From the NCBI GenBank assembly GCA_002269645.1, contig NIVC01002706.1, forward strand, positions 62,001 to 126,000: a stretch of DNA of 64,000 nucleotides, given 5' to 3'. The DNA is from Macrostomum lignano (lineage: Eukaryota). The notes beneath the pieces are model-generated. The model was not told the DNA's origin and did no database searches. It was given only the letters and a program-made list of their open reading frames with translations. The position numbers were made by a program, and so were the translations under genes. Within the stretch, counting starts at the first letter, position 1, and the number at the start of each line of letters is the position of its first letter. Below, piece by piece: positions 12,903 to 55,051 of this stretch.

Positions 12903-13443
<541 letters not shown>

Positions 13444-14054: not shown

Positions 14055-14294
14055 AATCATCATCATCATCATCATCATCACCATAATCATCATCATCATC
14101 ATCATCATCATCATTATCATCATCATCATCATCACCATAATCACCATCACCACCACCATCATCATCATCATCATCATCATCACTATCACCACCATCATCA
14201 TCATTACCATCATCATCATCATCATCATTATCATCATCATCATTACCATCATCATCATCATCATCATCATCATTACCATCATCACCATCATCAC

Positions 14295-14333
<39 letters not shown>

Positions 14334-14366
14334 TATCATCATCATCATCATCACCATAATCACCAT

Positions 14367-14398
<32 letters not shown>

Positions 14399-14507
14399 CT
14401 ATCACCACCATCATCATCATTACCATCATTATCATCATCATCATTACCAACATCATCATTATCATCATCATCATTACCATCATCATCATTATCATCATCA
14501 TCATTAC

Positions 14508-14538
<31 letters not shown>

Positions 14539-14636
14539 TTCTTCTTCATCATCATCACCATCATCAGAGTCATCATCATCTTCATCATCATCGGCATCAT
14601 CACCATCATCATCACCATAATTGTCTTCACCATCAG

Positions 14637-14672
<36 letters not shown>

Positions 14673-14762
14673 TATCATCATCATCATGATCACCATCATG
14701 ATCACCATCATCATCACCATCATCATCATCATCATTAGCATCATCATCGGCATCATCACCAT
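14055..14762. repeat. (CAT)n microsatellite 2, with internal duplication
   Basis: CAT/CAC/TAT run; the block near 14120-14210 recurs near 14340-14425. Confidence 0.97.
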
Positions 14763-15599
14763 AGTTTCGTCGGTGTCGAAATTCTTAATCCCAGCAAGCG
14801 CAGCTCAAATCAACATCTCAATGCATCCCCAATCAGATTAACTCAAGTCCCATCTGCCAATGTATCAAATTCCTACCGACACGAAAATCCCTGATAATCG
14901 ATTCAAAATGCAATTTATCAGAAATAGAGCATCCCCTATCGCGGCTAATCCTCGCTCAGTTATTGTCTGCCTCTTCGACACCTGGAAATGGGATACTCGG
15001 CGTGAAAGGTAGAATATAGGAGGCTGGGGGGGGCGCAATGGAAACTGGAGCTCGCGAAATGCGGAGATGTGCGTGTGGGCGGGGCGGGCTGTCTTCCTTC
15101 GAATTGTAAGCTCTTGACAAGTATTTACCGCTCTGGGGGGCACATTGTAGTGCTGCAGCAGCATAAACAACCGCGCCGCTTGGGGGGGGGGGGGGTTGAA
15201 GCGAACCTAGGACCCTCCGCGTCTCTCTCTCTCGTCTCTCTGTCCTTCCGGTCAAGACACAGAGCGGCAGGAATGACAGAATAGCAGGCTGCACTTTAGC
15301 CCCTCTACTGGGCTTGAAGAGGGGAGGGAGCTTTTCGGGAGCTCGGGGTGCTGGCGTCGGGAAGCAGACGGCGGCTCTGCATTGTTTATCCCTCAGCTCA
15401 GACCCCCCAGCGTGAATTGGGCCCTTCTCTTTATGGCCTCCCACCTTTTGTAGGCCCACTACTGTCCTGCCTGTCATTCACGATGGCTGCGCTTGTCAGT
15501 TCTACGCAAATTATGTCTTGATGATTGCAGCTGCGTTGATACGGTTAATATCATTATTCTCCATGATCGTGTCGCATTTACTGTCTTCATTATAATCAG

Positions 15600-16477
15600 C
15601 GGCTTCATCATCACCGGCATCACCACCGGCATCACTATTATCATCACCAGCATCACTATTATCATCACCCGCATCACCATTATCATCACCGGCATCACTA
15701 TTATCAACACCGGCATCACCATTATCATCACCGGCATCACCATTATCATCACCCGCATCACCATTATCATCACCGGCATCACCATTATCATCACCGGCAT
15801 CACCATTATCATCACCGGCATCACCATTATCATCACCCGCATCACCATTATCATCACCCGCATCACCATTATCATCACCCGCATCACCATTATCATCACC
15901 GGCATCACCATTATCATCACCGGCATCACCATTATCATCACCGGCGTCCATTTATCGTCACCGGCATCATCATCACCGGCATCGCCATCATCACCGGCAT
16001 CACCATTATCATCACCGGCATCATCATCACCGGCATCACCATTATCATCACCGGCATCATCATCACCGGCATCATCATCATCATCACCGGCATCACCATT
16101 ATCATCACCCGCATCACCATTATCATCACCGGCATCACCATTATCATCACCCGCATCACCATTATCATCACCGGCATCACCATTATCATCACCCGCATCA
16201 CCATTATCATCACCGGCGTCCATTTATCGTCACCGGCATCATCATCACCGGCATCGCCATCATCACCGGCATCACCATTATCATCACCGGCATCATCATC
16301 ACCGGCATCACCATTATCATCACCGGCATCATCATCACCGGCATCACCATCATCATCACCGGCATCACCATTATCATCACCGGCATCACCATTATCATCA
16401 CCGGCATCATCATCACCGTCATCGTCACTGCTATCTCAATCGTCTCCATCATCATCATCACCATCATCACCATCATC

Positions 16478-16523
<46 letters not shown>

Positions 16524-16566
16524 CCCACCATCATCGTTACCATCGTCACCAGTCTCAATTATCACC
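15600..16566. repeat. CAT-derived 21-bp minisatellite grading into (CAT)n
   Basis: (atcaccattatcatcaccggc)n; ~272-bp higher-order unit marked by ggcgtccatttatcg near 15944 and 16216. Confidence 0.95.
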
Positions 16567-16958
16567 CACAGCACAATCAACAGAAGCTCATTCATCATTT
16601 TCCATTACTTTTTCCGCAAGCAGTCATCGCAGTTCAGAAAGGAATGCAAAGCTTATCGTCATTTTGCGTGTGCCGCCCTTCAAAAGCCCCAGATTCCGAT
16701 GCCGGGCCTGCTGGATCACGAGGTCCCATCTGCCCGCAGTGCAAACGTCTTTGACCACCGGAGCCCCCCCCCCCAGCTGGCGGTTGAATCCATACCCAGC
16801 CGCTGTCTGTGCGGCACCGTGAATCAGTCATGACCCGAATCCCAACAACCCGTGCCGACATTTCAGGCCTAGCTGGCTGCCAGCTTCCACTCTCTGTGTG
16901 CTCCTCTTTGACTTCAAAGACCTATTGTTTATCAGGCTTGTCTTCTGCAAACCTAGCC

Positions 16959-17061
16959 ATGCAGCCAAGTCTGCAAAATCGACGGCTTCCGCTGCCGCCG
17001 CTGCCGACGCCGTCGATGCCGCCACCGCTGCCGCCGCCGCTGCTTCTGCTGCTGGCTGTTG
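16959..17061 (+). CDS. GPI-protein gene exon 1 (signal peptide); start may be ATG 16959 or ATG 17016
   Basis: gccATG; MQPSLQNRRLPLPPLPTPSMPPPLPPPLLLLLAV+G; phase-1 donor G|gtgaga matches the phase-1 acceptor at 30180. Confidence 0.65.
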
Positions 17062-20000
17062 GTGAGAGGCTTGGCTTTGTGTTGCTTTTATCAGTGTGCG
17101 CTATGACTCATCAGTGTGCGCTATATTACTCATCAGTGGGTGCTATGACTCATCAGTGTGCACTATGACTCATCAGTGTGCGCTATGACTCATCAATGTG
17201 CGCTATTACTCATCAGTGTGCGCTATGACTCATCAGTGTGCGCTATGACTGATCAGTGTGCGCTATGAATCATCAGTGTGCGCTATATTACTCATCAGTG
17301 TGCGCTATGACTCATCAGTGTGCACTATATTACTCATCAGTGTGCGCTTTGACTCATCAGTGTGCGCTATGACTCATCAGTGTGCGCTATGACTCATCAG
17401 TGGGTGCTAGGATTCATCATTGGGCGCTATGACTCATAAGTAACCCTAACCCCCAAGGCTGCCAGAGACTTGTAGCGCTGGCTACCAAAAGATGAAAGAT
17501 GAAGGCAATCAGTGCTTGATTGGCATCGTTGACACCACTGGCACCATTACAGTGGGCTGGGTTGCGCGCTTATGATAGTGCGCGCTTATGATAGTGCGCG
17601 CTTACGATTGTGCGCGCTTATGATAGTGTGCGCTTATGATAGTGCGCGCTTATGACAGTGTGCGCTTACGATTGTGCGCGCTTTTGTGATTATGATAGTT
17701 TTGCCCCGAAATACCGGTACAACAGGTGCGCTTTTGACAACGGCGTCTCACACAAGTCTCGTTTGCAGCAAACTGATTTTAAAAATCTCTGCTTCATTTC
17801 AAAACTTCAAAGTTTTCCTAAACTTATACCATACTTCTAAATAGATTTCTAATTAGAAAGATCCTTTTCAACATAAAACTTTGTATTTGAAGCTTTAATA
17901 AGGATTGAATAATTTACGATGCTTGATAAGGAAGGGAATTCGCGCAAAAGCTAAGCTGCTTTGTTATTCAGCGTTGTTCTCCACTTTTTGCCAGTGTTTC
18001 CTGGAAAAAAGAGTTCTTGCTTTCGCCGCACCCCTCCCGACACCACTTAGTACAAGATCGGGTCCGCTCGGTCCACCATCGAATAAGCTAGTTGCCAACG
18101 CTGCAGCATGGGTGATGAGGCCATTTCAAAAGCATCCCAACCCCAGCCTCTATCAAATAGTTTTAGTAAAAACAAGTTTTTTTCAGAGTTCATGTTTTTT
18201 TCAGCGACAAAATAACCACGGAAGTAACGGAATTGTTGACTCTTGGCGGGGGAAAATGGTTATGGTGCAGGCAAAAATGAATGATGGCTCATCATATTTA
18301 GACAGCTCTGTCAGAGCTTTTTAAGCAGTCTGCAGTTGGAAATGCACAAAGTAGAATTAATGAATTCGCGTTGTAAAATACTTGATGGAATGACTGCGGG
18401 CAGCGGTTTCAGTGTGACTTTGACATAACAAAACATTTTTATTGAGTTAATAAACTAATAAATGATGAAATAGCTTCCACTAGACTTACAGCTTGGGTAT
18501 TAATGTGAAGAGGAGTGAAAGACTGGGAGAGTGAAAGACTGAGAGAGTGAAAGACTGGGAGAGTGAAAGGCTGGGAGAGTGAAAGATTGAGAGAGTGAAA
18601 GACTGGGAGAGTGAAAGACTGGGAGAGTGAAAGACTGGGAGAGTGAAAGACTGGGAGAGTGAAAGTCTGGGAGAGTGAAAGACTGAGAGAGTGAAAGGCT
18701 GGGAGAGTGAAAGACTGAGAGAGTGAAAGACTGGGAGAGTGAAAGACTGAGAGAGTGAAAGACAGGAGTTCACATACAAATGAAGTCCATAAATAGCGAA
18801 TTAGCAGAGTGTTGATAAAAGAGCTCATAAATGAAAGCCATTCTAGGCTAACAGTTTGAAACAAGCCTCGGTCGCTTGCAGATATCAGTGAATAAAGACA
18901 GGGGAGAGAATCATGCAGGGCTGTTGCAGCAGCGGCGGCGGTAAGCCGGCGAATTCCTCAACGAGGATCGATGGCTGTTTTCGGGCTTTTCAAAATACCG
19001 CATTTAGTTGGGGGGGATGCAGTTTAGCCTGTGGGCGCCAGTTCCGGGCTCTGGCAATGAAAGCTGGCAAACTCTGGGAGTTTATTGCTGTGCGCAGTCA
19101 CGGCCGGCCCAGGTGAGAGAATGAGGAGAGAGAATAAAAATACGGTTTTGCGATTTCCAACTGCCAGCAGCAGGGAGACGGCAACGGGGGCATTTAAGTC
19201 ATTCTGCTTTTTCAAAGCAAAGTTTAACGTAACAGGGATAGCATACACTGAAGAGATTTGTGCAAGAGTTTTTTCAGTGGGTACTGAAAAAATTAAAGCT
19301 ACTGCTAAAGTATTGTCAGTGGGTCAACGCTAGAGCTCTAATGGGGTCAATGGGTTCGATGTAAACTTCTTGGGGTCAGTAGGTCAAGATTAGAATTCCG
19401 AGGGTCAGTAGGTCAAGATTAGAATTCCGAGGGTCAGTGAGTCAAGATTAGAATTCCGAGGGTCAGTGAGTCAAGATTAGAATTCCGAGGGTCAGTGGGT
19501 CAAGATTAGAATTCCGAGGGTCAGTAGGTCAAGATTAGAATTCCGAGGGTCAGTGAGTCAAGATTAGAATTCCGAGGGTCAGTAGGTCAAGATTAGAATT
19601 CCGAGGGTCAGTGAGTCAAGATTAGAATTCTGAAGGTCAGTGGGTCACGATTAGGGTTCTTAGAATCAGTGGGTCAAGATCAGGGTTCTTTGGGTCACTG
19701 GGTCAGGATTTGGATTCCTTGGGTTAGTGGGTCCGGATTGGAATTCTTAGAATCATGAGCTAAGATTGGGATTCTTAGAAACAATGAGCTAATATTCATA
19801 TTCTTAGAAACAGTAAGCTAAAATTTAGGATTCTTAGAAACAGTGAGCTAAGATTAGGATTCTTAGAAACAGTGAGCTAAAATTAGGATTCTTAGAAACA
19901 GTGAGCTAAGATTAGGATTCTTAGAAACAGTGAGCTAAAATTAGGATTCTTAGAAACAGTGAGCTAAGATTAGGATTCTTAGAAACAATGAGCTAATATT

Positions 20001-23000
20001 CATATTCTTAGAAACAGTGAGCTAAGATTAGGATTCTTAGAATGTCTCCAGTTTGATTCAAATTTTTTTCTATTCCAATTAGTTTTTCAACTTGCAGCGA
20101 AGGTTTTTGCTAATCGCAGATAATTTGAAGCATCAAGTCCTACAATATCGAAGTTAAAAAATCTGATCATTAAGGAAAATATTTTTTGCATTATACAAAT
20201 TTTGAAAATAACCTGTTTCTCTAACAGCCTTTTATCCCTGGGCAGAATTTAATTAAAAATGGCTGGCACTGCTCTCAGCCTGTTGCAGCTCAGAATCAGT
20301 CCACCCTCAGGCAAGACAATTAATTCTGTTGTAAGCTGTGCAACTTCACAATGAAAACTGCAATTGTGTCGGCAGACATCACAGAATATTTGTTTAAAAT
20401 TCTGAGCGTAATTTTCTTTGAGCAGCTACTTGTAGCAGTTATGGACTCTTTTGGGTTTGAAGCGCTGTGCGAGATTAGATAAGATTATAACTCCCCAGGT
20501 GCTATCAAGGTAGGGATTAGAATTCCCCGGGCTATCTGGATTAGGATTAGAATTTTCCAGGCTATATGGATTAGGATTAGAACTCCCCGGGCTATCTGGA
20601 TTAGGATTAGAACTCCCCGGGCTATCTGGATTAGGATTAGAATTTTCCAGGCTATATGGATTAGGATTAGAACTCCCCGGGATATCTGGATTAGGATTAG
20701 AATTCCTCGGGCTATCTGGATTAGGATTAGAACTCCCCGGGATATCTGGATTAGGATTAGAATTCCTCGGGCTATCTGGATTAGGATTAGAATTTCCCAG
20801 GCTATCTGGATTAGGATTAGAATTTCCCAGGCTATCTGGATTAGGATTAGAACTCCCCGGGATATTTGGATTAGGATTAGAATTCCCCCAGACTATCTAG
20901 ATTAGGATTAGAACTCCCGGGATATTTGGATTAGGATTATAACTCCCCAGGTGCTATCAAGGTAGGGATTAGAATTCCCCGGGCTATCTGGATTAGGATT
21001 AGAATTCCCCGGGCTATCTGGATTAGGATTAGAATTTTCCAGGCTATATGGATTAGGATTAGAATTTCCCAGGCTATCTGGATTAGGATTAGAACTCCCC
21101 GGGATATCTGGATTAGGATTAGAATTCCTCGGGCTATCTGGATTAGGATTAGAATTTCCCAGGCTATCTGGATTAGGATTAGAATTTCCCAGGCTATCTG
21201 GATTAGGATTAGAACTCCCCGGGATATTTGGATTAGGATTAGAATTCCCCCAGACTATCTAGATTAGGATTAGAACTCCCGGGATATTTGGATTAGGATT
21301 ATAACTCCCCAGGTGCTATCAAGGTAGGGATTAGAATTCCCCGGACTATCTGGATTAGGATTAGAATTTCCCAGGCTATATGGATTAGGATTAGAACTCC
21401 CCGGGCTATCTGGATTAGGATTAGAATTTCCCAGGCTATCTGGATTAGGATTAGAACTCCCCGGGATATCTGGATTAGGATTAGAATTCCTCGGGCTATC
21501 TGGATTAGGATTGGAACTCCCCGGGATATTTGGATTAGGATTAGAATTCCCCGGGCTATCTGGATTAGGATTAGAATTTCCCAGGCTATCTGGATTAGGA
21601 TTAGAACTCCCCGGGATATTTGGATTAGGATTAGAATTCCCCCAGACTATCTAGATTAGGATTAGAACTCCCGGGATATTTGGATTAGGATTAGAATTCC
21701 CCGATCTATCAGGATGGGGATTAGAAAAGTTTCGACATTGAGCAGCCGGCTGAATCATCAGGCACACAATCAGTGAGCAGCCGGCTGAAACATCAGGCAC
21801 ACAATCAGTGAGCAGCCGGCTGAAACATCAGGCACACAATCAGTGAGCAGCCAACAAAGTGCTCAGCTTTCAGCACAAAAGTGTGCAGAGAGCACCAGAG
21901 GGGTGCAGAACCGTTTCCAGTGTGCTCAGAGAGGCTGAGGTCCTCTCCGCCATCCTCTTGCCTCAGGGATGAGGCAGTTCCCATGTCCTCTTTCTCTCTC
22001 TCCCCAATTTCCTTAATTTTTATCCAATTACCCTCTCTCTCTCCCCACTTACTGGCCCGAAGATCGGGAAGTTCCATGCGGGGCAGAGAGAGAGGGGGCG
22101 GAATGCGATACCCTAATTGTGCTCCCACAAGGAAACTGCGCCTTTTCCGAGAGCCTGAGTGGGATGGGGGTTCTCACACAAAAACAGGTGTGCTTGCAGA
22201 AGATTATTTATCTGCCTGCCCGCTTCTTCTCTTGTCTGTCGGGTTCTTAAATTACTGTGTGCTTGCCCTGCCAGCAGCAAACAAGCCTTACTATCTGCTG
22301 ATATGCATTTTACTGAGAACCACTTTCAAGCACTATGACCCAGAATGAAAACAGAGTGACCCACTTTTAAATTACTGTGACCCATATGTACTCAGACTTG
22401 AACTTGCAGTGCGACCCATAGTTAAAAGTTCTGTGACCCAGATTTGAAGAACTGTGACCCAGGTGACCCAGATTTGAAGCACTGTGACCCAGATGACCCA
22501 GATGACCCAGATTTGAAGCACTGTGACCCAGATGACCCAGGTGACCCAGATTTGAAGCACTGTGACCCAGATGATCCAGATGACCCAGATTTGAAGCACT
22601 GTGACCCAGATGACCCAGATGACCCAGATTTGAAGCACTGTGACCCAGATGACCCAGGTGACCCTTATTTGAAGAAATATAAATTTGACCCAGGTGACCC
22701 AGATTTGAAAGCAATGTGACCCAGGTGACCCAGATGACCCATTATTTTGAAGCACTGTTACCCAGGTTTGAAGAAATGTGACCCAGGTGACCCAGATTTG
22801 AAGCACTGTGACCTAGATGACCCAGACGACCCAGAATGGAAGCAATATTCACAGGTGACCCAGAGTTGAAGCGCTGTGATCCAGGTGACCCAGGTGACCC
22901 AGATTTGAAGCTCTGTGATATAGCTGACCCAGACGACCCAGAATGGAAGCAATATTCACAGGTGACCCAGAGTTGAAGCGCTGTGATCCAGGTGACCCAG

Positions 23001-26000
23001 GTGACCCAGATTTGAAGCTCTGTGATATAGCTGACCCAGACGACCCAGAATGGAAGCAATATTCACAGGTGACCCAGAGTTGAAGCGCTGTGACCCAGGT
23101 GACCCAGATGACCTAGATTTGAAGTAAATTGACCCAGACTTGACCTAACAGTGTGACCCAGCACTCACCTCTCAATAGGCAAGCAACCTTTTTACATCAT
23201 TGCTGGCCTGCCAGCCTGATAAACGAGCTCAGCCCCTACAGAATGCGCAAGCACTCCAGAATTTGTCACCTCCAGCCCCCTCGCCACTCCCCTCCATTTA
23301 CTCCGGCCTCTCAATCCAGTGCAGAGCTGCCCAGAATTTGCATAGTGAGATCGGCCAGGCACCGGCCAAGGCCCGGTGATTAACTTGATTAACGGCGACT
23401 CCCGGAAGCCTCGCGCCCGGCGCCTCCGTTGAGACAGCAAAAGCCATGCAGGCTTAAACAGATCCAGCCCGCCCAGCCCCAGCAGTCCGGCTTCAAGGAC
23501 TCAAGCGGCCACCTGTCACAGCTTGTTAACTGACCGGCTTGTCAAGGGCGTCGCGGGGGGGGGGGGTACATCGCAGTGAAGGAGGAGGCGGAGTAGGACT
23601 GCTCAACCGCGAGATTGATTTTCCTGAGTTTCCTTGGCCGAAACTCTCCCAGCCTGCCTTGGCTTAAAGCTAGATCGCAAATAAGAGCTAGGTTACTTTC
23701 ACCGAGTCTGTCGCTTCTCAGACTTGGCTGTCGCTAGCACTCGATCGCCCAACTCGTCACTCGCTCACTCACACCTGAGCAGTGAGTTCTACTCAGGTGT
23801 AATGGCTTCTGCAGTTGGCAGTTCCTGTTCCAGGTGAAACCGCGAATGTTTCAACTATAACTTTCTTTATTTAGGTTATTAAAGTTCACCTAATTAAAAT
23901 TATCTAGCATCTTAAACCATCTGAAGATGATCACAAGAGTGGGGTTGAGAGACTGGTTGAGACTATAGAAGAGACGCGGAAATGCAGAGGTTGAGAAATG
24001 GCGCAAAAACATACTGAGAGAGACATGGTGAGATACTGAGAGAGAGACAGGGTGAGATACTGAGAGATGCACGGTAAGATATTGAAAGAGGCTGAGATAC
24101 TGAGAGAGAGGCAATGTGAGATACCGAGAGAGACAGGGTGAGATACTGAGAGAGAGACATGGTGAGATACTAAGAGAGAGGCAGGGTGAGATACTGAGAG
24201 AGAGGCAAGGTGAGATACTAAGAGAGAGACAGGGTGAGATGCTCTGAGAGAGACAGGGTGAGGTACTGAGAGAGAGACAGGGTGAGATACTGAGAGAGAG
24301 GCAAGGTGAGATACTGAGAGAGACAGGCTGAAATACTCTGAGAGAGACAGGGTGAGATACTGAGAGAGACATGATGAGATACTAAGAGAGACAGAGTAAG
24401 GTATTGAGAGAGGCAGGGTGAGATACGGAGAGAGACAGGGTGGGATACGGAGAGAGACAGGGTGAGATATTAAGAGAGGTAGAGGGCGAGACACTGAAAG
24501 AGACACAGTGAGATACTGAAGGAGAGAGCAAGAAAAAGCGAGAGAATAGCATTGAACAGAAAGAGCCGATATCTGCAGAGACGAGAGAAAGACAAATGTT
24601 TGAGCTGAAGCCTCTGGCATTTAAAACCAAGCATTTGAGGTTAATAACATACCCGCCCCAATAGTCCCTGCCGAAAGCGAAGTTGTGTCAAACCTCCGCC
24701 AGCCTTGTGCGTGCGCGCTGATAGGAATTTTCCAGGAAACCGTCAGCCGGATTTCATCAGAGCTCTCGAACACCCGACAAGAACACAACAAGCGCATAGT
24801 TGCTGCAAAGTTCCAAGACGCTCGAAACGTTTTCGATTTCGATTTTCGAGGGGACATGAACGGAAATCAAAGAACTAATCCCAACCCCGGCTGAACTTCT
24901 GCCTGCTACACAAAAGGAATTGCAAGCTGATCAATGCGGTCCGTGGTCACGATGGAGCTGCGACAGAAATGAGACAGAGAGCATCAGAGACGAGATCTGC
25001 CGCCTTGTCCTCAAGCTGTGAGCGATGGACTGTGAAATTCTATTGGACATGTTTCCGACTGGCGTGCGCCAGCTTTGTATTGAGAATCGGATTTGAAAGT
25101 GCTCTGGCCATCTAGTATCCCAGTCCTTCTTCTTCTTGAATTCTCCCTCCGCCCCAGTCAGCTGTCTCAGGTCGTCGTCGAGCCGGAGAAAGCTGAGACG
25201 CAAGCCCAGAATAGGAGCAAGAGGAAGAAAAACGGTGGTGGCAGCTAAGTGCTAATGAGGGCCGCTGATCTGCTTTCAGTCGTCAGTGTTTCACCCCATC
25301 CCGATCCCCCCCAACTGCTTTTTATCGCCACCCGGGAGGCTGGGAGCTCCATCACTCCGAGCCCGCCAGGCTGGGATCGGATTTCGGAGGAGGAAGGCCG
25401 CGGTACTTTTCTATAGGAGCCAGCAGAAGAAGAAATGCAGCAAGAAACACCTCCCCCCATCTCCCTGGCTTTTTAAAGGCGGAGAGTGGCTTTCAGAATT
25501 GGAGAGCGGCGCTGCACGCGTCGCGTCATACAAAAGGCCCTCAGTGCATCTCTCTTAGCGCTCCTCTTTAACTTTTCACAGTATCATTCCTTTGCTCCGG
25601 CTTTGACTTTGCCTGACTTGGGCCTGGTCGCTTTTAAAAGCAGCGCCTCCTTCTCGTTCCATCTTATCTTGCACGCTCGCTTTTCTCTGTGTTTTTCCCG
25701 TCGCGCTGTGCCCTTATCTCTGCAGTGGGATTTTATCCCTTGTTGAGCAGGCGGGATGGCTGGCAGTTTCGGTTTAGAAGCTTCTGCAGTGGAAAGCAGA
25801 TTTTTTCATTCTATTTCGCAACTGTTTCAGCCCCGGCCTGTCTGTCTGCTTCAACTGTTCGGATTTCTGTTCAAAAAGTTAAATCGATTCTTTTCCGCTC
25901 TGGCCATAAAAACAAAATGAGCCCGAGGAGGAGTAGTGGGGCCCAAGGAGGGGGGAGGGGGGTTGCCCAGACTTCAGCCGGCCCTGGTCAATTAAACTTC

Positions 26001-29000
26001 ATCGCCTCATTTAGCTCCCAATGGGTTGGGGATCCGCAAGAGAGGGTGGGAACTAGGAGAGAGAGATGGGAAAAGTGGGGACGGCAGAGGCAGCTGCTGG
26101 GAATTAAGAGTTGCAGCAAGAGGACGCTTTGAGACCACTTGTCGCAGATGGGGAACTCAGGACCAGACAAGCCCCCCAAGGAATTAGTCCTGAGGGCGCC
26201 GGTGCAGGGGGTTAGTCACCAATTAAGAAGCTGCTGCTGCTGCTGCTGCTGTTTGGGGAGGGAGCCGCCGAGATCGCGCGAACAGAAACTCAATTTGATG
26301 CGGTGACAGCTTAGGAGACTGGGGAATGAGGAGGGCTGCGCTGCGGGGTCACTTTTTGGGAGGGATTGGATGGAGAAGTGGAGTCCGATTTTGGGATATC
26401 GAGGGCGAGACTCAATGAGAGAATAGGAGAGGAAGTCAGAGATTAGAGGAAGAGGGGCAAACCAGATTTATTGGGAAAGATGGGAGAGGTAGAGAAGGCA
26501 TGGGTAGCTGATGGCTAGAGGGGTAGAGAAGGCATGGGTAGCTGATGGCTAGAGGGGTAGAGAAGGCATGGGTAGCTGATGGCTAGAGGGGTAGAGAAAA
26601 GGTAGATGGAGGCGGAGGGTAGAGAAGGCAAGATAGATTATGGCAGGGGTAGAGAAGGCAGGGTAGATGATGGTAGAGGGGTAGAGAAGGCAGGGTAGAT
26701 GATGGCAGAGGGGTAGAGAAGGCAGGGTAGATGATGGCAGAGGGGTAGAGAAGGCAGGGTAGATTATGGTAGAGGGGTAGAGAAGGCATGATAGATGATG
26801 GCAGAGGGGTAGAGAAGGCAGGGTAGATGATGGCAGAGGGGTAGAGAAGGCAGGGTAGATTATGGTAGAGGGGTAGAGAAGGCATGATAGATGATGGCAG
26901 AGGGGTAGAGAAGGCAGGGTAGATGATGGCAGAGGGGTAGAGAAGTCAAGGTAGGTGAGGGCAGAGGGTAGATAAGACATGACAGGCGGTGTCAAAAACA
27001 CTGATGACAAAAGATGACATCAAGCTGACACATTCCACTAGATAGAGTCAGCACAGTGAAGCAGTCAGCAATTTTGATTTAAATAAAACAGGCGGGGGCC
27101 GCCAGATGGCAGCAGATTGATAAGGGGAACAGAGCCTGTCTGTCAGTTTCCTGTCTGACAGTTTTTGTCCCGCATGCAGAGGCGACGGTGGAAGCCGCCC
27201 AAATCCGGGACTTTGCGCTCCTGCATTGCTTGGAGGGAATCAGCTGTAATCTCTCCGCTATTGCTGTGCGGCAAGAATTAGGGAAGCTGGAACGCCTGCA
27301 TCGAAATTTCTTTGCTTAAACGTCGCCTACAAGCGAAGTTACAAGAAGCTGTTGAATTTTTAACTAAAACTATTGCAACATGTTTGTCCTGATTGCTGCT
27401 TCCGCCAGCCCCGGCTCCTAATAAAGTCTCCTAGCTGTAAAGCTTTTACCTGTTCTGAAATTATTTTCTTTAAAACTGAAAGTATTAGTACAATGGTAGA
27501 ACAGTAATTGTACAATCATTCCGTGGCCTGTCTGTCGATCACTCCTCCCAGATACCCTATGCCTGTCATTTGTTCACTGCAACCCACAGCCTCAACCACA
27601 CCACAGCCTCAACCACACCACAGCCTCAACCACACCACAGCCTCAACCACACCACAGCCTCAACCACAGCCTCAACCACAGCCTCAACCACAGCCTCAAC
27701 CACAGCCTCAACCACACCACAGCCTCAACCACACCACAGCCTCAACCACACCACAGCCTCAACCACACAACAGCCTCAACCACACCACAGCCTCAACCAC
27801 ACCACAGCCTCAACCACACCACAGCCTCAACCACACCACAGCCTCAACCACACCACAGCCTCAACCACACCACAGCCTCAACCACACCACAGCCTCAACC
27901 ACACCACAGCCTCAACCACACCACAGCCTCAACCACACCACAGCCTCAACCACACCACAGCCTCAACCACACAACAGCCTCAACCACACCACAGCCTCAA
28001 CCACACCACAGCCTCAACCACACCACAGCCTCAACCACACCACAGCCTCAACCACACCACAGCCTCAACCACACCACAGCCTCAACCACACCACAGCCTC
28101 AACCACACCACAGCCTCAACCACACCACAGCCTCAACCACACCACAGCCTCAACCACACCACAGCCTCAACCACACAACAGCCTCAACCACACCACAGCC
28201 TCAACCACACCACAGCCTCAACCACACCACAGCCTCAACCACACCACAGCCTCAACCACACCACAGCCTCAACCACACCACAGCCTCAACCACACCACAG
28301 CCTCAACCACAGCCTCAACCACAGCCTCAACCACAGCCTCAACCACAGCCTCAACCACACCACAGCCTCAACCACACCACAGCCTCAACCACACCACAGC
28401 CTCAACCACACCACAGCCTCAACCACACAACAGCCTCAACCACACCACAGCCTCAACCACACCACAGCCTCAACCACACCACAGCCTCAACCACACCACA
28501 GCCTCAACCACACCACAGCCTCAACCACACCACAGCCTCAACCACACAACAGCCTCAACCACACCACAGCCTCAACCACACCACAGCCTCAACCACACCA
28601 CAGCCTCAACCACACCACAGCCTCAACCACACCACAGCCTCAACCACACAACAGCCTCAACCACACTATAGCCTCAACCATATAACGACCTCTCCTTTGT
28701 GTGCTCAGTCAGTGCAATTGTTTGAACCCTGGCTGGCAGTGGATCTCTCACTTATCTATCATTATTCATCGTTGACTTTAATAAGCCAGAAAAGCATTGT
28801 TCTCAGGGTGAACTTTGCCTTTACTCTTTAATCTGACTACAACTAGAAATTTTAAGATCGCTCCGTACTTCTATTTAGTTTAAAGAGGCGGGCTTAGTCG
28901 GCAGAACAAGGCGGCTTCGACACAGGCAGAGGCAGAGGCGGGAGCGCAAGCTGCGCGGGCGACCTCGCTGCAGGAAGTATTAATTAGTCGCAGGGTGACA

Positions 29001-32000
29001 CGGGCCTTGCCGCCTCTCTGCACCCATTTGGCCCTCTTGGCCTCCTGCTAAACTCCGTGACAGCTCCCCTTATTCCCCGTATCCCCCCTCTGACATACCT
29101 TACAGTTGGGCGTGACAGAGAGAGGCAGAGCTGCTGAGTGGCGGTGGAGCTTATCTCTGCCCCGCTAAGCGCGTAATTTTCTATTCACCAAAATTCGCAC
29201 TCTTTCCTGCTGACTCTTGCCGGCGCATCTCTACGAGCGTAGAAGCAAAATAATTGAAATTTGCATCAGCTGTTTAGTTAATAAAATTCTGGGGCAGAAT
29301 TATTTATCAGAGTCAGTTAATTGGGGCTGGATATAGTATCCTTTTTCTATTTATTCCGTATTGCCTTGGCCAATTATAGCAAATAATTCATTGCCAGAAT
29401 ATTGAAAGTAGTGAATTTTAGGCAGCTTATTATTATTAGAAAAAATAAAATAATTTCTTACTGCAATATTCAAACTAGAACCAATCTGCGAGCGAGCAGG
29501 GGGAGGCGAAAATATATTGCGAGCAGTTAGGGTTGCAGCATTCAAGCTCCAGCCAATCAGGGAGCGAGCAGGGGATGAAAATACATTGCGAGCAGTTAGG
29601 GTTGCAGAATTCAAGCTCCAGCCAATCAGCGAGCGAGCAGGGGACGAAAATATATTGCGAGCAGTTAGGGTTACAGTATTTAAGCTCCAGCCAATCAGCG
29701 AGCGAGCAGGGGACGAAAATACATTGCGAGCAGTTAGGGTGCAGCATTCAAGCTCTAGCCAATCAGCGAGCGAGCAGGGGACGAAAATATATTGCGAGCA
29801 GTTAGGGTTACAGTATTTAAGCTCCAGCCAATCAGCGAGCGAGCAGGGGACGAAAATACATTGCGAGCAGTTAGGGTGCAGCATTCAAGCTCCAGCCAAT
29901 CAGCGAGCGAGCAGGGGACAAAAATATATTGCGAGCAGTTAGGGTTACAGTATTTAAGCTCCAGCCAATTAGCGAGCGAGGAGGAAACGAAAATACATAG
30001 CGGGCAGATGCATCATTCAAGCTCCAGCCAATTAGCTCAGTGGGTTTCCCCACTCGATGGGTAGCCAATAAGCGAGCGAGTAGGGTCAGGGAAAGAGCAG
30101 ATGCTTTTAGGCTTAAACAGTCCGTTACTTCTTAGCAAAAAACTAGTCCAATTTTACAACAACAGCCCTTAACTTTCAGGCTGCCTATCTTTTATGGTCC
30201 CAACCAGTGCAGCATCGTGCGAAATCGGCAGCTACTGGAGCGAGTGCAGCCGCCGCTACCAAGGAGCTAATCTATTCGATAATTCCTACAATTTTGGCTG
30301 GAATCTGACTTTTAGCCTGAAAGACATGTGCAGGTGCGGCTAACAGGACATTATTTATGCAAAGTACAATGTACACTGTCATTATTTCAACTAAAAAATA
30401 TTTTTTAGACTGCGAAGCCATGTGAAACTGTTGAAGTGCCTGCACGACTTGATCAACCAGAGATGCGCGGAAAAGATGGACTTTCTCACCATTCAAACTG
30501 TGCTGGACTATAAAAGATACGAACGAGCGGCTGACTTCATCTGTCAGGAGGGCAACATTCAGTGTGAGTTATTTGTTAGTATTTCATGTTTCCGCACACT
30601 TTCATGATATTTCATGCGAATGCAACCAGCTCGCACCTACTTAAATACCTGTGCCAGTGTTCGGGCAGAGCATCGGCTGCCTCGAAAAGTTTCAAGAGGA
30701 GGCCAAGGCGTGCGCCAGGCTGCACTCATTCTCTAGCACCATCAAAACGGCCAACAGGGATATCGAGAGCGCGCTGAATGACCAGTCGGAGGACACGCTG
30801 GGAATTCGCACCGACAAGGCCGCCATGCTGCTCTTTATGGAGCGCAAGATCAAGCAGAAGCTCTGCTCGTGAGTGCCCGCCCACATGCTTGCTCTCTGTG
30901 GCCTCAGCCTCAACCACAGCATCAATTACACCACAGCATCAATTACACCACAGCTTCAATTACACCGCAGCCTCAACCACACTGCAGTCTCAACCACACC
31001 AAACCCTCATCCACAGCCTTAACCACAGCCTCAACAACAGCCTCAACCACAGTCTCAACCACAGCCTCAACCACAGTCTCAACCACAGTCTCAACCACAG
31101 TCTCAACCACAGCCTCAACCACAGTCTCAACCACAGCCTCAACCACAGCCTCAACCACAGCCTCAACCACAGCGTCAACCACAGCCTCATCCCCAGCCTC
31201 AACCAAAGCCTCAACCACAGCCTCCACCACAGCCTCAACCACAGCCTCAACCACAGCGTCAACCACAGCCTCATCCCCAGCCTCAACCAAAGCCTCAACC
31301 ACAGCCTCCACCACAGCCTCAACCAAACCACAGCCTCGTGAAGCTCACGTACAAATTACCTAATAAGCTTGAGACACGACAGGAAAACTTAGCCGATGCT
31401 TCCAGCAATTTAAATTCTGCTGCTCGCAAAAATTCTGACCTCAGCCGCAGCAGTTGCGACAACGGACTCAAGGATGAGCAAAGCCGGAGCAGTCGGAAAT
31501 GAGATTTCACTGCCACAGGAAACTGGACAGGATTGCCTAGGGGGGAAGTTCTTTCTTTCTGAGGAAGAAAACGACCTCATGCCGACTGTGCTCGGGAGAA
31601 GTCTCGGACTCGACTCGCTTGACCGATCTCACCCGATTCAGGGGGGCATTGGGGCAGGTCATTTCGGCTGGGCAAAGCTCCAGATAGGCTGTCCCGGCTA
31701 TTTTTTATCTCTCAGCAATGATGATGAAGCAAGTCGTTTGGCCAAGTCGAAATCGATGCCCAACCATTTGATCAGAGAGTTGCAGAGAGCCAAATTTCAC
31801 TACAAATTATTCTATCACTAATAGTCTGGTAAATTATATTATAGAAAGGAGGAAAATATCCAGACAAAAATTCTCATTTTTGATCAATCCAGCTCATATT
31901 TAAATAAAACTTATCCAGTTAAAACTCTAAACGCAAAAAAATTCACTAGTTTTTTTTTAAAGTCACCTACTTCTAGTAGAACAAAATGAGTATTGGTATC

Positions 32001-33638
32001 GGTTTTTGCGCGAGAATTGACTGAGCACGATTGTCCGCTGTGACAGTTGCCTGTTTTGCTTGGTTGGCTACTGTCTCTACAGGTAGCTAATTGTCTCTGC
32101 AAGTAGCTAATTGTCTCTGCAGGTAGCTAATTGTCTCTGCAGGTAGCTAATTGTCTCTACAGGTAGCTAATTGTCTCTGCAGGTAGCTAATTGTCTCTGC
32201 AGGTAGCTAATTGTCTCTGCAAGTAGCTAATTGTCTCCACAGGTAGCTAATTGTCTCTGCAGGTAGTTAATTGTCTCTGCAGGTAGCTAATTGTCTCTGC
32301 AGGTAGCTAATTGTCTCTGCAAGTAGCTAATTGTCTCTGCAGGTAGCTAATTGTCTCTGCAGGTAGCTAATTGTCTCTACAGGTAGCTAATTGTCTCTGC
32401 AAGTAGCTAATTGTCTCTGCAGGTAGCTAATTGTCTCTGCAGGTAGCTAATTGTCTATGCAGGTAGCTAATTGTCTCTGCAGGTAGTTAATTGTCTCTGC
32501 AGGTAGCTAATTGTCTCTGCAGGTAGCTAATTGTCTCTGCAGGTAGCTAATTGTCTCTGCAGGTAGTTAATTGTCTCTGCAGGTAGCTAATTGTCTCTGC
32601 AGGTAGCTAATTGTCTCTGCAGGTAGCTAATTGTCTCTGCAGGTAGCTAATTGTCTCTACAGGTAGCTAATTGTCTCTACAGGTAGCTAATTGTCTCTAC
32701 AGGTAGCTAATTGTCTCTGCAAGTAGCTAATTGTCTCTGCAGGTAGCTAATTGTCTCTGCAAGTAGCTAATTGTCTCTACAGGTAGCTAATTGTCTCTGC
32801 AGGTAGCTTATTGTCTCTGCAGGTAGCTAATTGTCTCTACAGGTAGTTAATTGTCTCTGCAGGTAGCTAATTGTCTCTGCAGGTAGCTAATTGTCTCTAC
32901 AGGTAGCTAATTGTCTCTGCAGGTAGCTAATTGTCTCTGCAGGTAGCTAGTTGGCACTGCAGGTAATTGGAACTGCAGGTAATTAGCACAACAGGTAATT
33001 GGCACAACAGGTAATTAGCACCGCAGGTAATTGGAGCTGCAGGTAATTAGCACTGCAGGTAATTAGCACTGCAGGTAATTAGCACAACAGGTAATTAGCA
33101 CTGCAGGTAATTGGAACTGCAGGTAATTGGAGCTGCAGGTAATTAGCACTGCAGGTAATTAGCACTGCAGGTAATTAGCACTGCAGGTAATTAGAGCTGC
33201 AGGTAATTAGCACTGCAGGTAATTAGCACTGCAGGTAATTAGCACTGCAGGTAATTAGCACTGCAGGTAATTGGATGTCAACACGCTCCCTTTTCCCGCA
33301 GAGACCGACGAAAAGTAGTCGAATGCGTTGAGCGTCTTCTACTCAACGACCGACATCTGTGCCCCAGCTCCAGCATCCGCCTAGTAACCAGATACTACTC
33401 GCTCCTGCTGCCCGACACCTGCAGCTACGTTGAGCTGTCCCCAGCCGTCGCTTCGCCGGGCGGCGGCGAAGTCGCTTCGTCATCGAGTCGATACGAAACC
33501 GGCCAGACAAACGAATACGGGGCCAGCGTCGGCCGGGTCAACCGCGGCAACGGAGCTATCGGGACAGCCAACTTCAGGTCGTCTGCTATCCTTGCAGTCA
33601 GCGCTGCTGTGGCTGCCGCAGTCAGATGCGTGTTCTAA
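16959..33638 (+). CDS. Predicted secreted, GPI-anchored cysteine-rich protein (two 6-Cys helical modules, DUF19/CPG4-like); join(16959..17061,30180..30333,30409..30563,30658..30868,33302..33638), 319 aa
   Basis: Manually spliced. Intron phases 1,2,1,2 are all mutually compatible and the total is 960 nt. All junctions are GT-AG (G|gtgaga, AG|gtgcgg, T|gtgagt, TC|gtgagt; acceptors aactttcag, ttttttag, gtgccag, ttttcccgcag). The join gives signal peptide ...LLLLLAVGCLSFMVPTSAA, 12 regularly spaced Cys and a C-terminal hydrophobic tail SSAILAVSAAVAAAVRCVF*. Exons 2-5 are well supported; the exon 1 link is inferred. Confidence 0.75.
17088..17440. repeat. 20/22-bp minisatellite
   Basis: (tcatcagtgtgcgctatgac)n, starting about 26 bp after the exon-1 donor. 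Confidence 0.92.
17562..17700. repeat. 16-bp minisatellite
   Basis: (gcgcgcttatgatagt)n. Confidence 0.88.
18505..18765. repeat. 16-bp minisatellite
   Basis: (gagagtgaaagactgg)n. Confidence 0.93.
19365..19640. repeat. 29-bp minisatellite A
   Basis: (gtcaagattagaattccgagggtcagtag)n. Confidence 0.93.
19740..20043. repeat. 29-bp minisatellite B
   Basis: (ttaggattcttagaaacagtgagctaaga)n. Confidence 0.92.
20478..21722. repeat. 30-bp minisatellite with higher-order structure
   Basis: (ggattaggattagaattccccgggctatct)n; marker tataactccccaggtgctatcaagg at 20486, 20938 and 21300. Confidence 0.95.
21742..21852. repeat. 35-bp tandem repeat, about 3 copies
   Basis: cagtgagcagccggctgaaacatcaggcacacaat at 21771 and 21806, partial at 21841. 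Confidence 0.88.
22365..23160. repeat. GACCCAG-based minisatellite with a 107-bp higher-order repeat
   Basis: gacccagat/gacccaggt subunits; gacccagacg at 22819, 22926 and 23033. Confidence 0.92.
23995..24520. repeat. ~22-bp purine-rich minisatellite
   Basis: (gagagagacagggtgagatact)n, degenerate. Confidence 0.9.
26485..26965. repeat. 32-bp purine-rich minisatellite
   Basis: (ggcagaggggtagagaaggcagggtagatgat)n. Confidence 0.92.
27582..28680. repeat. 17/12-bp minisatellite
   Basis: (ccacaccacagcctcaa)n with 12-bp ccacagcctcaa patches. Confidence 0.95.
29470..30035. repeat. 68/69-bp tandem repeat, each unit carrying AGCCAATCAG and TTAGGG
   Basis: CCAAT at 29481, 29553, 29622, 29691, 29759, 29828, 29896, 29965 and 30028. 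Confidence 0.92.
30180..30333 (+). CDS. GPI-protein gene exon 2
   Basis: cttaactttcag|GC; (G)CLSFMVPTSAASCEIGSYWSEC...NLTFSLKDMC; donor AG|gtgcgg; in-frame stop at 30170 just upstream of the acceptor. Confidence 0.8.
30409..30563 (+). CDS. GPI-protein gene exon 3
   Basis: ttttttag|A after a 75-bp intron; LRSHVKLLKCLHDLINQRC...FICQEGNIQ; donor T|gtgagt. Confidence 0.85.
30658..30868 (+). CDS. GPI-protein gene exon 4
   Basis: gtgccag|TG after a 94-bp intron; FGQSIGCLEKFQEEAKAC...KQKLC; donor TC|gtgagt. Confidence 0.85.
30900..31335. repeat. 12-bp minisatellite (same family as 27582-28680)
   Basis: (ccacagcctcaa)n, starting about 30 bp after the exon-4 donor. Confidence 0.93.
32070..33272. 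repeat. 20-bp array grading into a 16-bp array, both with a CAG|GTA core
   Basis: (gcaggtagctaattgtctct)n to ~32945, then (gcaggtaattagcact)n to ~33272. Confidence 0.96.
33302..33638 (+). CDS. GPI-protein gene exon 5 (terminal)
   Basis: Strong acceptor ctcccttttcccgcag|A; DRRKVVEC...DTCSYVELSP...RGNGA...SSAILAVSAAVAAAVRCVF-TAA(33636-33638). Confidence 0.85.
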
Positions 33639-33789
33639 CCCGGACTGCAGCTGCCTGTCCTGACTGGCATTGAGCTGAGTCAGCTGCTTCTTCTGTGCAA
33701 GCAAAGCGCCTGTGACTCCTGCATGTATTGTTTTCTTTGAATCTCGCCCAATACAACTGTGCCCTCTACAGTCATCCCACTGTTTTCCT

Positions 33790-34470
33790 CCCTCCCTACC
33801 CCCTGTCCCCTCCCTCTTTGCCCCTTGTCCCTCCCTCTCTGCCCCCTGTCCCCTCCCTCTTTGCCCCTTGTCCCTCCCTCTCTGCCCCCTGTCCCCTCCC
33901 TCTTTGCCCCTTGTCCCTCCCTCTCTGCCCCTGTCTGCCCCTGTTCCCTCCCTCTCTGTCCCCTGTCCCCTCCCTCTTTGCCCCCTGTCCCTCCCTCTCT
34001 GCCCCTGTCTGCCCTGTTCCCTCCCTCTCTGTCCCCTGTCCCTCCCTCTCTACCCCCTGTCCCCTCCCTCTTTGCCCCCTGTCCCTCCCTCTCTGCCCCT
34101 GTCTGCCCCTGTTCCCTCCCTCTCTGTCCCCTGTCCCCTCCCTCTTTGCCCCCTGTCCCTCCCTCTCTGCCCCTGTCTGCCCTGTTCCCTCCCTCTCTGT
34201 CCCCTGTCCCTCCCTCTCTACCCCCTGTCCCCTCCCTCTTTGCCCCCTGTCCCTCCCTCTCTGCCCCTGTCTGCCCCTGTTCCCTCCCTCTCTGTCCCCT
34301 GTCCCTCCCTCTCTACCCCCTGTCCCCTCCCTCTTTGCCCCCTGTCCTTCCCTCTCTACCCCCTGTCCCTCCCTCTCTGCCCCTGTCTGCCCTGTTCCCT
34401 CCCTCTCTGTTCCCTGTTCCCTCCCTCTCTGTCCCCTGTCCCTCCCTCTCTACCCCTGTCCTCCCCTTTC
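33790..34470. repeat. Pyrimidine-rich composite minisatellite
   Basis: ctgtcccctccctctttgccc and ctctctgcccctgt units. Confidence 0.92.
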
Positions 34471-34954
34471 TGTTTAAAATGTTTTCTAACAATGTGAGCC
34501 ACGTGTATTTTTTCTATCTTTGCTGTGGCTGTTTCCCTATCTTAAAGTTTTCGAATTGTTGCTTAAGAATATTTCAGTTATTAATATCCACAGGGGCCTG
34601 TAAATATCTGCATGCTTGGTTTGCGGTGTACCTTTCAATTGTACCCCTTTACTAATAGAAATTATTAATGAAGTTTGTGACGACAAGCAACCACTGAATT
34701 CTATAAAAATCAAAACCCTCTAATTTGTATGCGAGTGTGACTAATCAACTTGTAGATCCTGCTTATAGTTTGCACTTTTGTAGTCTGCTAGATGATTAGA
34801 ATTTGCGTTGAATTTTTCAATTCTAATGCCGGCACTGAGCATTTAAGCCAAGTCTAGAGCCCCTGTTCCATGCATCTTGAAGTGCGAATGCTTAGTGTGC
34901 GCACATCTGGACTGGCGTATCTATCTTGTGAAATCTGTGCACTTTTAGCTCGTG

Positions 34955-36765
34955 ATAATTCTCTCCTCTGTTCCTGATGATCCTCTCTCCCCTGTTCCTG
35001 ATGGTCCTCTCTCCCCTGTTCCTGATGATCCTCTCTCCCCTGTTCTTGATGATCCTCTCTCCTCTGTTCCTGATGATCCTCTCTCCCCTGTTCCTGATGA
35101 TCCTCTCTCCTCTGTTCCTGATGATCCTCTCTCCCCTGTTCCTGATGATCCTCTCTCCTCTGTTCCTGATGATCCTCTCTCCCCTGTTCTTGATGATCCT
35201 CTCTCCCCTGTTCCTGGTCCTCTCTCCTCTGTTCCTGATGATCCTCTCTCCCCTGTTCCTGATGATCCTCTCTCCCCTGTTCTTGATGATCCTCTCTCCT
35301 CTGTTCCTGGTCCTCTCTCCCCTGTTCCTTGTCCTCTCTCCCCTGTTCCTGATGATCCTCTCTCCCCTGTTCCTGATGATCCTCTCTCCCCTGTTCCTGA
35401 TGATCCTCTCTCCCCTGTTCCTGGTCCTCTCTCCCCTGTTCCTGGTCCTCTCTCCCCTGTTCCTGGTCCTCTCTCCCCTGTTCCTGGTCCTCTCTCCCCT
35501 GTTCCTGATGATCCTCTCTCCTCTGTTCCTGGTCCTCTCTCCCCTGTTCCTTGTCCTCTCTCCCCTGTTCCTGATGATCCTCTCTCCCCTGTTCTTGATG
35601 ATTCTCTCTCCCCTGTTCCTTGTCCTCTCTCCCCTGTTCCTGATGATCCTCTCTCCCCTGTTCCTGATGATCCTCTCTCCCCTGTTCCTGATGATCCTCT
35701 CTCCCCTGTTCCTTGTCCTCTCTCCCCTGTTCCTGATGATCCTCTCTCCCCTGTTCTTGATGATTCTCTCTCCCCTGTTCCTTGTCCTCTCTCCCCTGTT
35801 CCTGATGATCCTCTCTCCCCTGTTCCTGATGATCCTCTCTCCCCTGTTCCTGATGATCCTCTCTCCCCTGTTCCTTGTCCTCTCTCCCCTGTTCCTGATG
35901 ATCCTCTCTCCCCTGTTCCTGATGATTCTCTCTCCCCTGTTCCTTGTCCTCTCTCCCCTGTTCCTGATGATCCTCTCTCCCCTGTTCCTGATGATCCTCT
36001 CTCCCCTGTTCCTGATGATCCTCTCTCCCCTGTTCCTGATAATCCTCTCTGCCCTGTTCCTGATAATCCTCTCTCCCCTGTTCCTGATGATCCTCTCTCC
36101 CCTGTTCCTGATGATCCTCTCTCCCCTGTTCCTGATGATCCTCTCTCCCCTGTTCCTGATGATCCTCTCTCCCCTGTTCCTGATAATCCTCTCTCCCCTG
36201 TTCCTGATGATCCTCTCTCCCCTGTTCCTGATGATCCTCTCTCCCCTGTTCCTGATGATCCTCTCTCCCCTGTTCCTGGTGGTCCTCTCTCCCCTGTTCC
36301 TGATGATCCTCTCTCCCCTGTTCCTGATGATCCTCTCTCCCCTGTTCCTGATGATCCTCTCTCCCCTGTTCCTGATGATCCTCTCTCCCCTGTTCCTGAT
36401 AATCCTCTCTCCCCTGTTCCTGATGATCCTCTCTCCCCTGTTCCTGATGATCCTCTCTCCCCTGTTCCTGATGATCCTCTCTCCCCTGTTCCTGATGATC
36501 CTCTCTCCCCTGTTCCTGATGATCCTCTCTCCCCTGTTCCTGATGATCCTCTCTCCCCTGTTCCTGATGATCCTCTCTCCCCTGTTCCTGATGATCCTCT
36601 CTCTCCTGTTCCTGATGATCCTCATGATCCTCTCTCCCCTGTTCCTCATGGTCCTCTCTCCTCTGTTCCTCATGGTCCTCTCTCCTCTGTTCCTCATGGT
36701 CCTCTCTCCTCTGTTCCTCATGGTCCTCTCCCCCTTGTTTTCGATAATCTTCTCTCCCTGTTTCT
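34955..36765. repeat. 24/21-bp minisatellite
   Basis: (cctgatgatcctctctcccctgtt)n. Confidence 0.96.
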
Positions 36766-54958: not shown

Positions 54959-55051
54959 CAAGAGACGCCTGTCCACTTCAAGTATCTCAAGCAGGCTGAA
55001 CCAAGCGAAATCCTAAAATAAACCGGATCCCACACTCGCACAGGAATCGCA

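Follow-up and report, generated by a model that had tools for sequence, protein, structure and literature searches.

The 64,000-nucleotide window of the Macrostomum lignano genome considered here (GenBank assembly GCA_002269645.1, contig NIVC01002706.1, positions 62,001 to 126,000, forward strand; all coordinates below are counted from the first nucleotide of this stretch) contains a split gene at 16959-33638 that probably encodes a glycosylphosphatidylinositol (GPI)-anchored, disulfide-rich surface protein. Scripted joining of five plus-strand exons in phase (103 + 154 + 155 + 211 + 337 = 960 nt) yielded an open frame of 319 codons followed by TAA. An initial annotation had proposed such a gene, with five exons of compatible phases and a product of 319 amino acids (aa), spread over 16.7 kb of satellites. 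Both parts of this proposal were borne out: the introns are of the GT..AG type, the joined exons form a single open frame with a coding signal, homologues were identified for exons 2-5, and tandem repeats with a Tandem Repeats Finder (TRF) score >=100 occupy 46% of the 16,680-bp locus.

In exon 1, the coding part (16959-17061, 103 nt) covers residues M1 to V34 and contributes the first base of the G35 codon. It specifies the n-region of a signal peptide, together with most of the latter's hydrophobic core (..PPPLLLLLAV), and ends at the donor TTG/GTGAGA (the slash marks the junction here and below), and an alternative in-frame start, M20, is located at 17016. Intron 1 (17062-30179) measures 13,118 nt, about 46% of which consists of tandem satellites with periods of 16-137 nt. 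Exon 2 (30180-30333, 154 nt) encodes the end of the signal peptide, the cysteines C48, C57 and C85, the motif LFDxxYNFGW and, at 30302-30310, the glycosylation sequon NLT. It is followed by a GT..TAG intron of 75 nt (intron 2, 30334-30408) and by exon 3 (30409-30563, 155 nt), which contains C96, C105 and C131 (RSHVKLLKCLHDLINQRCAEKMDF..). Intron 3 (30564-30657, 94 nt, GT..CAG) leads to exon 4 (30658-30868, 211 nt), which harbors C145, C156 and C207 as well as the strongest coding signal of the gene (log-likelihood +39). Intron 4 (30869-33301, 2,433 nt) is again rich in satellites, which make up 65% of its length and have periods of 12, 16, 17 and 20 nt. Finally, exon 5 (33302-33638, 337 nt including the TAA at 33636-33638) encodes C216, C228 and C248 in the part that extends to 33422, followed by the stalk (33423-33545), a candidate omega site (33546-33551), a spacer and the C-terminal tail (33585-33635). 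Satellites begin 150 nt past the stop codon.

All four introns start with GT and end with AG. The donors of introns 1-4 read G/GTGAGA, AG/GTGCGG, GT/GTGAGT and TC/GTGAGT, and the corresponding acceptors read TTTCAG/, TTTTAG/, TGCCAG/ and CCGCAG/. Three of the four donors fit the consensus GT[G/A]AG described for M. lignano (PMC8629364), and the same fraction of acceptors (3/4) ends with CAG. A start of exon 4 at 30669, as given by the nearest AG, was considered and rejected; because this AG yields an in-frame stop codon, the exon must start at 30658, a position that is in frame and that agrees with the length of the paralogue described below. The coding potential was assessed with a codon table trained on the two recognizable genes of the window, a succinate-CoA ligase beta gene (257-5001) and a rhodopsin-type G protein-coupled receptor (GPCR) gene (59424-60479), both of which were confirmed by Pfam. 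The spliced model obtained a codon-usage log-likelihood of +91 bits in its own frame, as compared to -112 and -92 bits in the other two frames, and its GC content at third codon positions (0.69) falls within the range of the two training genes.

Three related proteins were identified, all of them from M. lignano. A word-indexed search against 5.8 billion proteins returned A0A1I8JQE3 as the single relative (E 5.8e-34), and an exhaustive HMMER search with exon 4 against 1.84 billion representatives recovered A0A1I8JQE3 (E 9.5e-13) along with A0A1I8F1F2 (E 7.5e-07) and A0A1I8IX97 (E 3.8e-06). A profile built from the window protein and the paralogue matched A0A1I8F1F2 with an E-value of 2.3e-93, which is largely a self-match since a near-identical sequence is part of the profile. 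The three UniProt models are fragmentary, frameshifted or fused, and none of them has been characterized. The earlier statement that no named orthologue could be recognized is to be corrected in so far as relatives are present in the databases. Outside Macrostomum no relatives were found, with the limit that only a 70-aa query was searched exhaustively so that distant relatives may be missed, and a metagenome scan retrieved no related loci. Judged from these comparisons, the proteins form a small, lineage-restricted family that is so far seen only in Macrostomum.

The closest relative, A0A1I8JQE3, follows exons 3-5, with 93% identity over 28 aa in exon 3 and 72% identity in exon 4. In tblastn comparisons with the window, the similarity hops between frames in exons 3, 4 and 5, and DNA-level similarity is also seen in alternative frames. 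Because exons 3-5 are followed with such frame hopping, A0A1I8JQE3 represents the same locus, or else an orthologous or homeologous one, as read from an assembly with many indels. It differs from the window model in that it is a fragment of 243 aa that lacks a start codon, a signal peptide and exon 2, and in that its N-terminus derives from a stretch that is non-coding in the window. This stretch is a unique sequence on the plus strand of intron 1 (28857-29023), identified by its tblastn similarity to the N-terminal “coding” part of A0A1I8JQE3, and it contains stop codons here. It is probably non-coding and would be a 5' exon that is untranslated or alternative, unless the A0A1I8JQE3 model contains an artefact here. 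At about 28975, CAGGAAGTATT falls one base short of a perfect CAG/GTAAGT donor, and in the other copy the stretch may function as a 5' exon of the alternative or untranslated kind.

The other two models, A0A1I8F1F2 and A0A1I8IX97, represent a paralogue that is 41-46% identical to the window protein. All 12 ectodomain cysteines (C48, C57, C85, C96, C105, C131, C145, C156, C207, C216, C228 and C248) were invariant in the paralogue in two alignments. Likewise, the alignment is gapless at the exon junctions 2/3, 3/4 and 4/5, the first of which spans the short intron 2, and the tblastn matches of the paralogue break exactly at the exon boundaries of the window model. Both models match exon 2 (RCNIGALWRTCKRDYGAKDLFDGGYNFGW) and exon 3, and the domain part of exon 5 is conserved in A0A1I8IX97 (DRLQFLNCVERELLRDRLRCP..YYSQLMPDWC). 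They share with the window protein the motifs LFDxxYNFGW, HVKxLKCL, KMDF, RAADxIC and IRTD and the register of the exon junctions. Both have a Pro/Leu-rich signal peptide at the N-terminus, as the window protein would have if exon 1 is correct, and A0A1I8IX97 additionally has a low-complexity stalk and a C-terminal hydrophobic stretch. We therefore consider that exons 2-5, with their order and phases, are verified via the related proteins. There are also differences: A0A1I8F1F2 ends at the equivalent of exon 4, the sequons of the paralogue are located at other places than that of the window protein, and A0A1I8IX97 is fused to an upstream protein. The first 135 residues of A0A1I8IX97 look by eye like a three-finger protein of the Ly6/uPAR type with a GPI-like tail of its own and the motif CCSSNNCN, and this part has no match in Pfam. 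Because these residues resemble a separate protein, A0A1I8IX97 appears to fuse two adjacent genes. A Ly6/uPAR-like gene may thus adjoin the paralogue, whereas none adjoins the copy in the window.

The translated window model displays the features that had been read from the DNA in the initial annotation, namely 12 ectodomain cysteines, an NLT sequon, an RGNGA region, a stalk and a hydrophobic C-terminus with no cytoplasmic part. In total, the protein has 14 cysteines, 12 of which belong to the mature ectodomain (C48-C248), while C36 is located in the signal peptide and C317 in the tail. N76-L-T is the sole sequon, and no internal duplication of a six-cysteine unit was detected in the domain. 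The only two hydrophobic segments, at residues ~27-42 and 301-319, are located at the two ends of the protein, and a Ser/Gly-rich stalk connects the domain to the omega region.

The C-terminus was compared by manual rules to the layout of a GPI signal, that is, small residues at the omega, +1 and +2 positions, then 5-10 polar residues as a spacer and, at the very end, a hydrophobic tail of 10-20 residues. The window protein has a candidate omega site at G290 or N291, followed by G-A, within the RGNGA motif at residues 289-293. This site is followed by a spacer of 9-10 polar residues (to S302) and a tail of 17 residues (A303-F319, AILAVSAAVAAAVRCVF) with nothing beyond it. The uninterrupted hydrophobic stretch comprises 13 residues (A303-V315). 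Thirteen residues are too short for a stable transmembrane helix, and the order of small residues, spacer and tail is that of a classic GPI signal. The window protein is thus probably a GPI-anchored surface protein, as far as can be told from these features of the chain.

Comparisons with known families and folds did not lead to an assignment. Neither the window protein nor its core nor any of the three UniProt models had a match in Pfam (hmmscan, E<=10). The names given to these models in the source, “RUN domain-containing” (A0A1I8JQE3), “DUF725-” (A0A1I8F1F2) and “DUF19 domain-containing” (A0A1I8IX97), could not be reproduced by Pfam, and we consider them unreliable because three members of one family bear three different names. 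DUF19 (PF01579) is a nematode family, with an extracellular domain that has 12 cysteines, and DUF725 (PF05267) is an insect family; although both names are attached to the paralogue models, neither profile matched at E<=10. Searches against the PDB sequences, with the single protein as well as with a profile, produced matches at chance level only. An AlphaFold prediction for A0A1I8IX97 alone was unusable, with a predicted local distance difference test (pLDDT) score of 38. For the paralogue core, aligned with the translations of the window exons, AlphaFold predicted an all-alpha structure of about 10 helices with medium confidence (pLDDT 62.6, predicted template modeling score 0.52). A Foldseek comparison of this medium-confidence model with the PDB is a weak test, and it retrieved generic helical bundles only, the best of which was a spectrin repeat (E 0.87, template modeling score 0.22).

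The closest working analogy is offered by the GPI-anchored, helical, cysteine-rich co-receptors GFR-alpha and GAS1 (Pfam GDNF, PF02351). The general plan would be the same, with a disulfide-rich, all-alpha ectodomain that comes after a signal peptide and before a flexible stalk leading to a GPI signal. However, there was no match to PF02351, to the PDB sequences or in Foldseek, and the window protein is not a member of this family on present evidence. It also has no C-x-C motif and a different cysteine spacing, which we take to set it apart from the GFR-alpha/GAS1 family. Proteins of the Ly6/uPAR family, which are typically small, GPI-anchored and rich in cysteine, would resemble it in their signal peptide, their GPI signal and the disulfides of their ectodomain. 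Three-finger domains are beta-structures of about 80 aa with 8-10 cysteines, whereas the domain of the window protein spans about 200 aa, is predicted to be all-alpha and has no match to UPAR_LY6.

The gene's 5' end requires a separate discussion. The frame in which exon 2 is read closes 9 nt upstream of the acceptor, and an upstream exon is therefore needed. Exon 2 itself opens with one half of a hydrophobic core plus the cleavage motif S-A-A (CLSFMVPTSAA). We compiled all ATG-led open segments in the region 8000-30170 that end at a phase-1 GT (n = 193), and exon 1 ranked first among the 193, with the most hydrophobic junction peptide and the best donor; the runner-up candidates are located within satellites or have poor donors. 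Given exon 1, manual rules suggest a signal peptide with the h-region LLLLLAVGCLSFMV, the c-region PTSAA/S and small residues at positions -3 and -1, with a rule-of-thumb cleavage site between A46 and S47 (30214/30215). The paralogue model A0A1I8F1F2 starts with a signal peptide of its own, MALLPALPLLLSLPALLLSPVSAAV, directly ahead of the equivalent of C48 and exon 2. This signal peptide and the exon-1-derived sequence MPPPLPPPLLLLLAVGCLSFMVPTSAA are alike in being Pro/Leu-rich and uncharged. A similarity scan of exon 1 against the paralogue signal peptide gave no discrimination, however, since satellite translations obtained higher scores. The earlier claim that the signal peptide is completed across a 13.1-kb intron can thus be upheld in part: the join is in phase and involves the best of the 193 candidates, but exon 1 is still inferred, being located in a degenerate repeat and having no homologue. 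Taken together, we regard exon 1 and its join over 13.1 kb as plausible and, on these sequence features, rather likely.

Two acceptor-like sites are located on the plus strand upstream of exon 1. The sequence TTTCAG at 16861-16866 fits YTNCAG, the acceptor motif for spliced-leader trans-splicing in M. lignano (PMC8629364), and it is a candidate for the 5' end of the mature mRNA; there is no ATG between this site and the start codon at 16959. The second sequence, TATCAG at 16930-16935, is preceded by a pyrimidine-rich run, ends 23 nt upstream of the ATG and matches the motif in part. It may be speculated that either site could take the spliced leader. No match to the spliced-leader gene or to Rfam families was obtained in the window. 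A nested gene was not found in intron 1, where no open reading frame (ORF) on either strand had a Pfam match or a convincing coding score.

We favor the hypothesis that the locus is an intact five-exon gene for a secreted, probably GPI-anchored, cysteine-rich helical surface protein, and we would put its probability at roughly 70%. Several observations weigh against it. All four splice junctions have been deduced from the DNA, and a look-up in a collection of 15 billion proteins retrieved neither the exact product of 319 aa nor any of three variants with other starts; the model has therefore not been produced by any annotation pipeline. At the 5' end, exon 1 is not covered by any homologue that we found, and its segment 16985-17054 is a degenerate, low-complexity (GCTGCC)n tract that can be read in three frames, one of which gives Pro/Leu. 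If counting starts at M1, the n-region of the signal peptide is rich in Pro and, at 27 aa, unusually long. Furthermore, intron 1 is about ten times longer than the mean for M. lignano introns, which is 1.1-1.4 kb (PMC5730564). The low complexity, the size of the intron and the mapping of the A0A1I8JQE3 N-terminus to 28857-29023 would be in line with a scenario in which exons 2-5 are real but are preceded by a different or additional first coding exon, possibly the stretch at 28.9 kb. Yet this stretch carries stop codons in the window, the region 8000-30170 contains no other ATG-led, phase-1 ORF with a hydrophobic end and a usable donor, and the signal peptide of the paralogue is Pro/Leu-rich like exon 1, so that we consider a different first exon to be unlikely, albeit worth bearing in mind. 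Another suggestion is that exon 2 comes first, either because the spliced leader is joined at its TTTCAG or because there are only non-coding exons upstream, in which case translation would start at M40 (ATG at 30194) and the protein would have no signal peptide. The acceptor of exon 2 does fit YTNCAG, and trans-splicing affects about 30% of the genes in M. lignano (PMC8629364). But translation from the ATG in the spliced leader would run in another frame, a short one of about 45 codons, the 12 conserved cysteines and the C-terminal anchor signal require entry into the endoplasmic reticulum, the paralogue has a full signal peptide, and half a hydrophobic core with a cleavage motif stands at the start of exon 2. 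We find this suggestion very improbable.

The anchor and the state of the gene raise questions of their own. The gene model could be right and the GPI anchor wrong, the product then being a soluble secreted protein or a single-pass membrane protein without a cytoplasmic tail. The GPI signal was assigned by rule-of-thumb criteria rather than by a trained predictor, the tail is rich in alanine and interrupted by R316, and A0A1I8IX97 runs on for about 35 aa after its hydrophobic stretch has ended, a sign that there could be a transmembrane anchor in that copy or that the model is faulty. These arguments are countered by the short length of the hydrophobic stretch (13 residues, or 17 for the whole tail) as compared to a stable transmembrane helix, by the location of the tail at the very end of the protein and by the small residues G-N-G-A at the right distance before it. 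A protein of this kind that lacks the anchor is, in our opinion, rather improbable. It could also be asked whether the gene is a silent or decaying duplicate, a homeologue whose expression has ceased. The genome of M. lignano is that of a hidden polyploid in which many blocks are duplicated (PMC5730564; PMC10468722), intron 2 has a weak donor (GTGCGG) that deviates from the consensus, and there is no AATAAA on the plus strand at 33639-36962, over the 3.3 kb that follow the stop codon. Against such decay, the frame is intact from the first to the fifth exon, the conserved motifs and each of the 12 cysteines have been kept, and the codon bias is strong, which makes a silent copy quite unlikely.

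According to the hypothesis of an intact five-exon gene, the pre-mRNA would be spliced from five exons, two of the introns being long and filled with satellites. The 319-aa product would enter the endoplasmic reticulum by means of its Pro/Leu-rich signal peptide, which would be cleaved off near A46/S47. The ectodomain of about 200 aa would then fold into an all-alpha structure with six disulfides formed by the 12 conserved cysteines, be glycosylated at N76 and continue into the Ser/Gly-rich stalk. The C-terminal signal would most likely be swapped for a GPI anchor near residue 290, leaving the domain on the outer face of the membrane, where it may stand on the short and flexible stalk as a helical module for binding. 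By analogy with other disulfide-rich ectodomains that are GPI-anchored, the protein would most likely bind a partner, such as a ligand, a co-receptor or a component of the matrix or of adhesion, rather than acting as an enzyme. A further idea is that these proteins constitute an undescribed, macrostomid-restricted family of GPI-anchored, all-alpha ectodomains with six disulfides and a fold outside Pfam and the PDB, perhaps a fast-evolving family of surface recognition or one related to reproduction; we propose this tentatively and think that it has rather less than an even chance of being correct.

Our analysis provides the first clean full-length reading of this family, from the signal peptide via the 12-cysteine helical domain and the stalk to the anchor signal. 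Its value lies mainly in annotation, and it indicates that genes located between the satellite arrays of this genome can be recovered by their splice phases. The protein would gain in interest only if its fold proved to be new or if it turned out to be expressed in one particular tissue, for example in neoblasts, the reproductive tract or the adhesive organs.

The genomic surroundings are of a similar character. Tandem repeats (TRF score >=50) from dozens of satellite families with periods of 9-272 nt cover about 51% of the 64-kb window, which is well above the 15% that tandem and simple repeats are reported to make up in Mlig_3_7, an assembly of M. lignano. Satellite-filled introns are normal for this genome, because the succinate-CoA ligase beta gene and the GPCR gene in the window are built in the same manner. 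The former (257-5001, plus strand) consists of at least four ORF pieces (257-706, 2288-2662, 3679-4071 and 4690-4998) with matches to the Pfam domains ATP-grasp_2 and Ligase_CoA, and its introns are repeat-bearing and 0.6-1.6 kb long. The rhodopsin-family GPCR is represented by a long ORF on the plus strand (59424-60479, within the region 59406-60482) with matches to 7tm_1 and Srw. An ORF with a good coding score at 55022-55321 on the plus strand may represent an N-terminal exon of this receptor, and a satellite that measures about 3 kb (55138-58224) lies between the two. Finally, long arrays of the CAT/CAC type at 12846-16548 can be translated in several frames into poly-His, poly-Met or poly-Asp; the resulting ORFs, with 170-450 codons, are mechanical and not genes.

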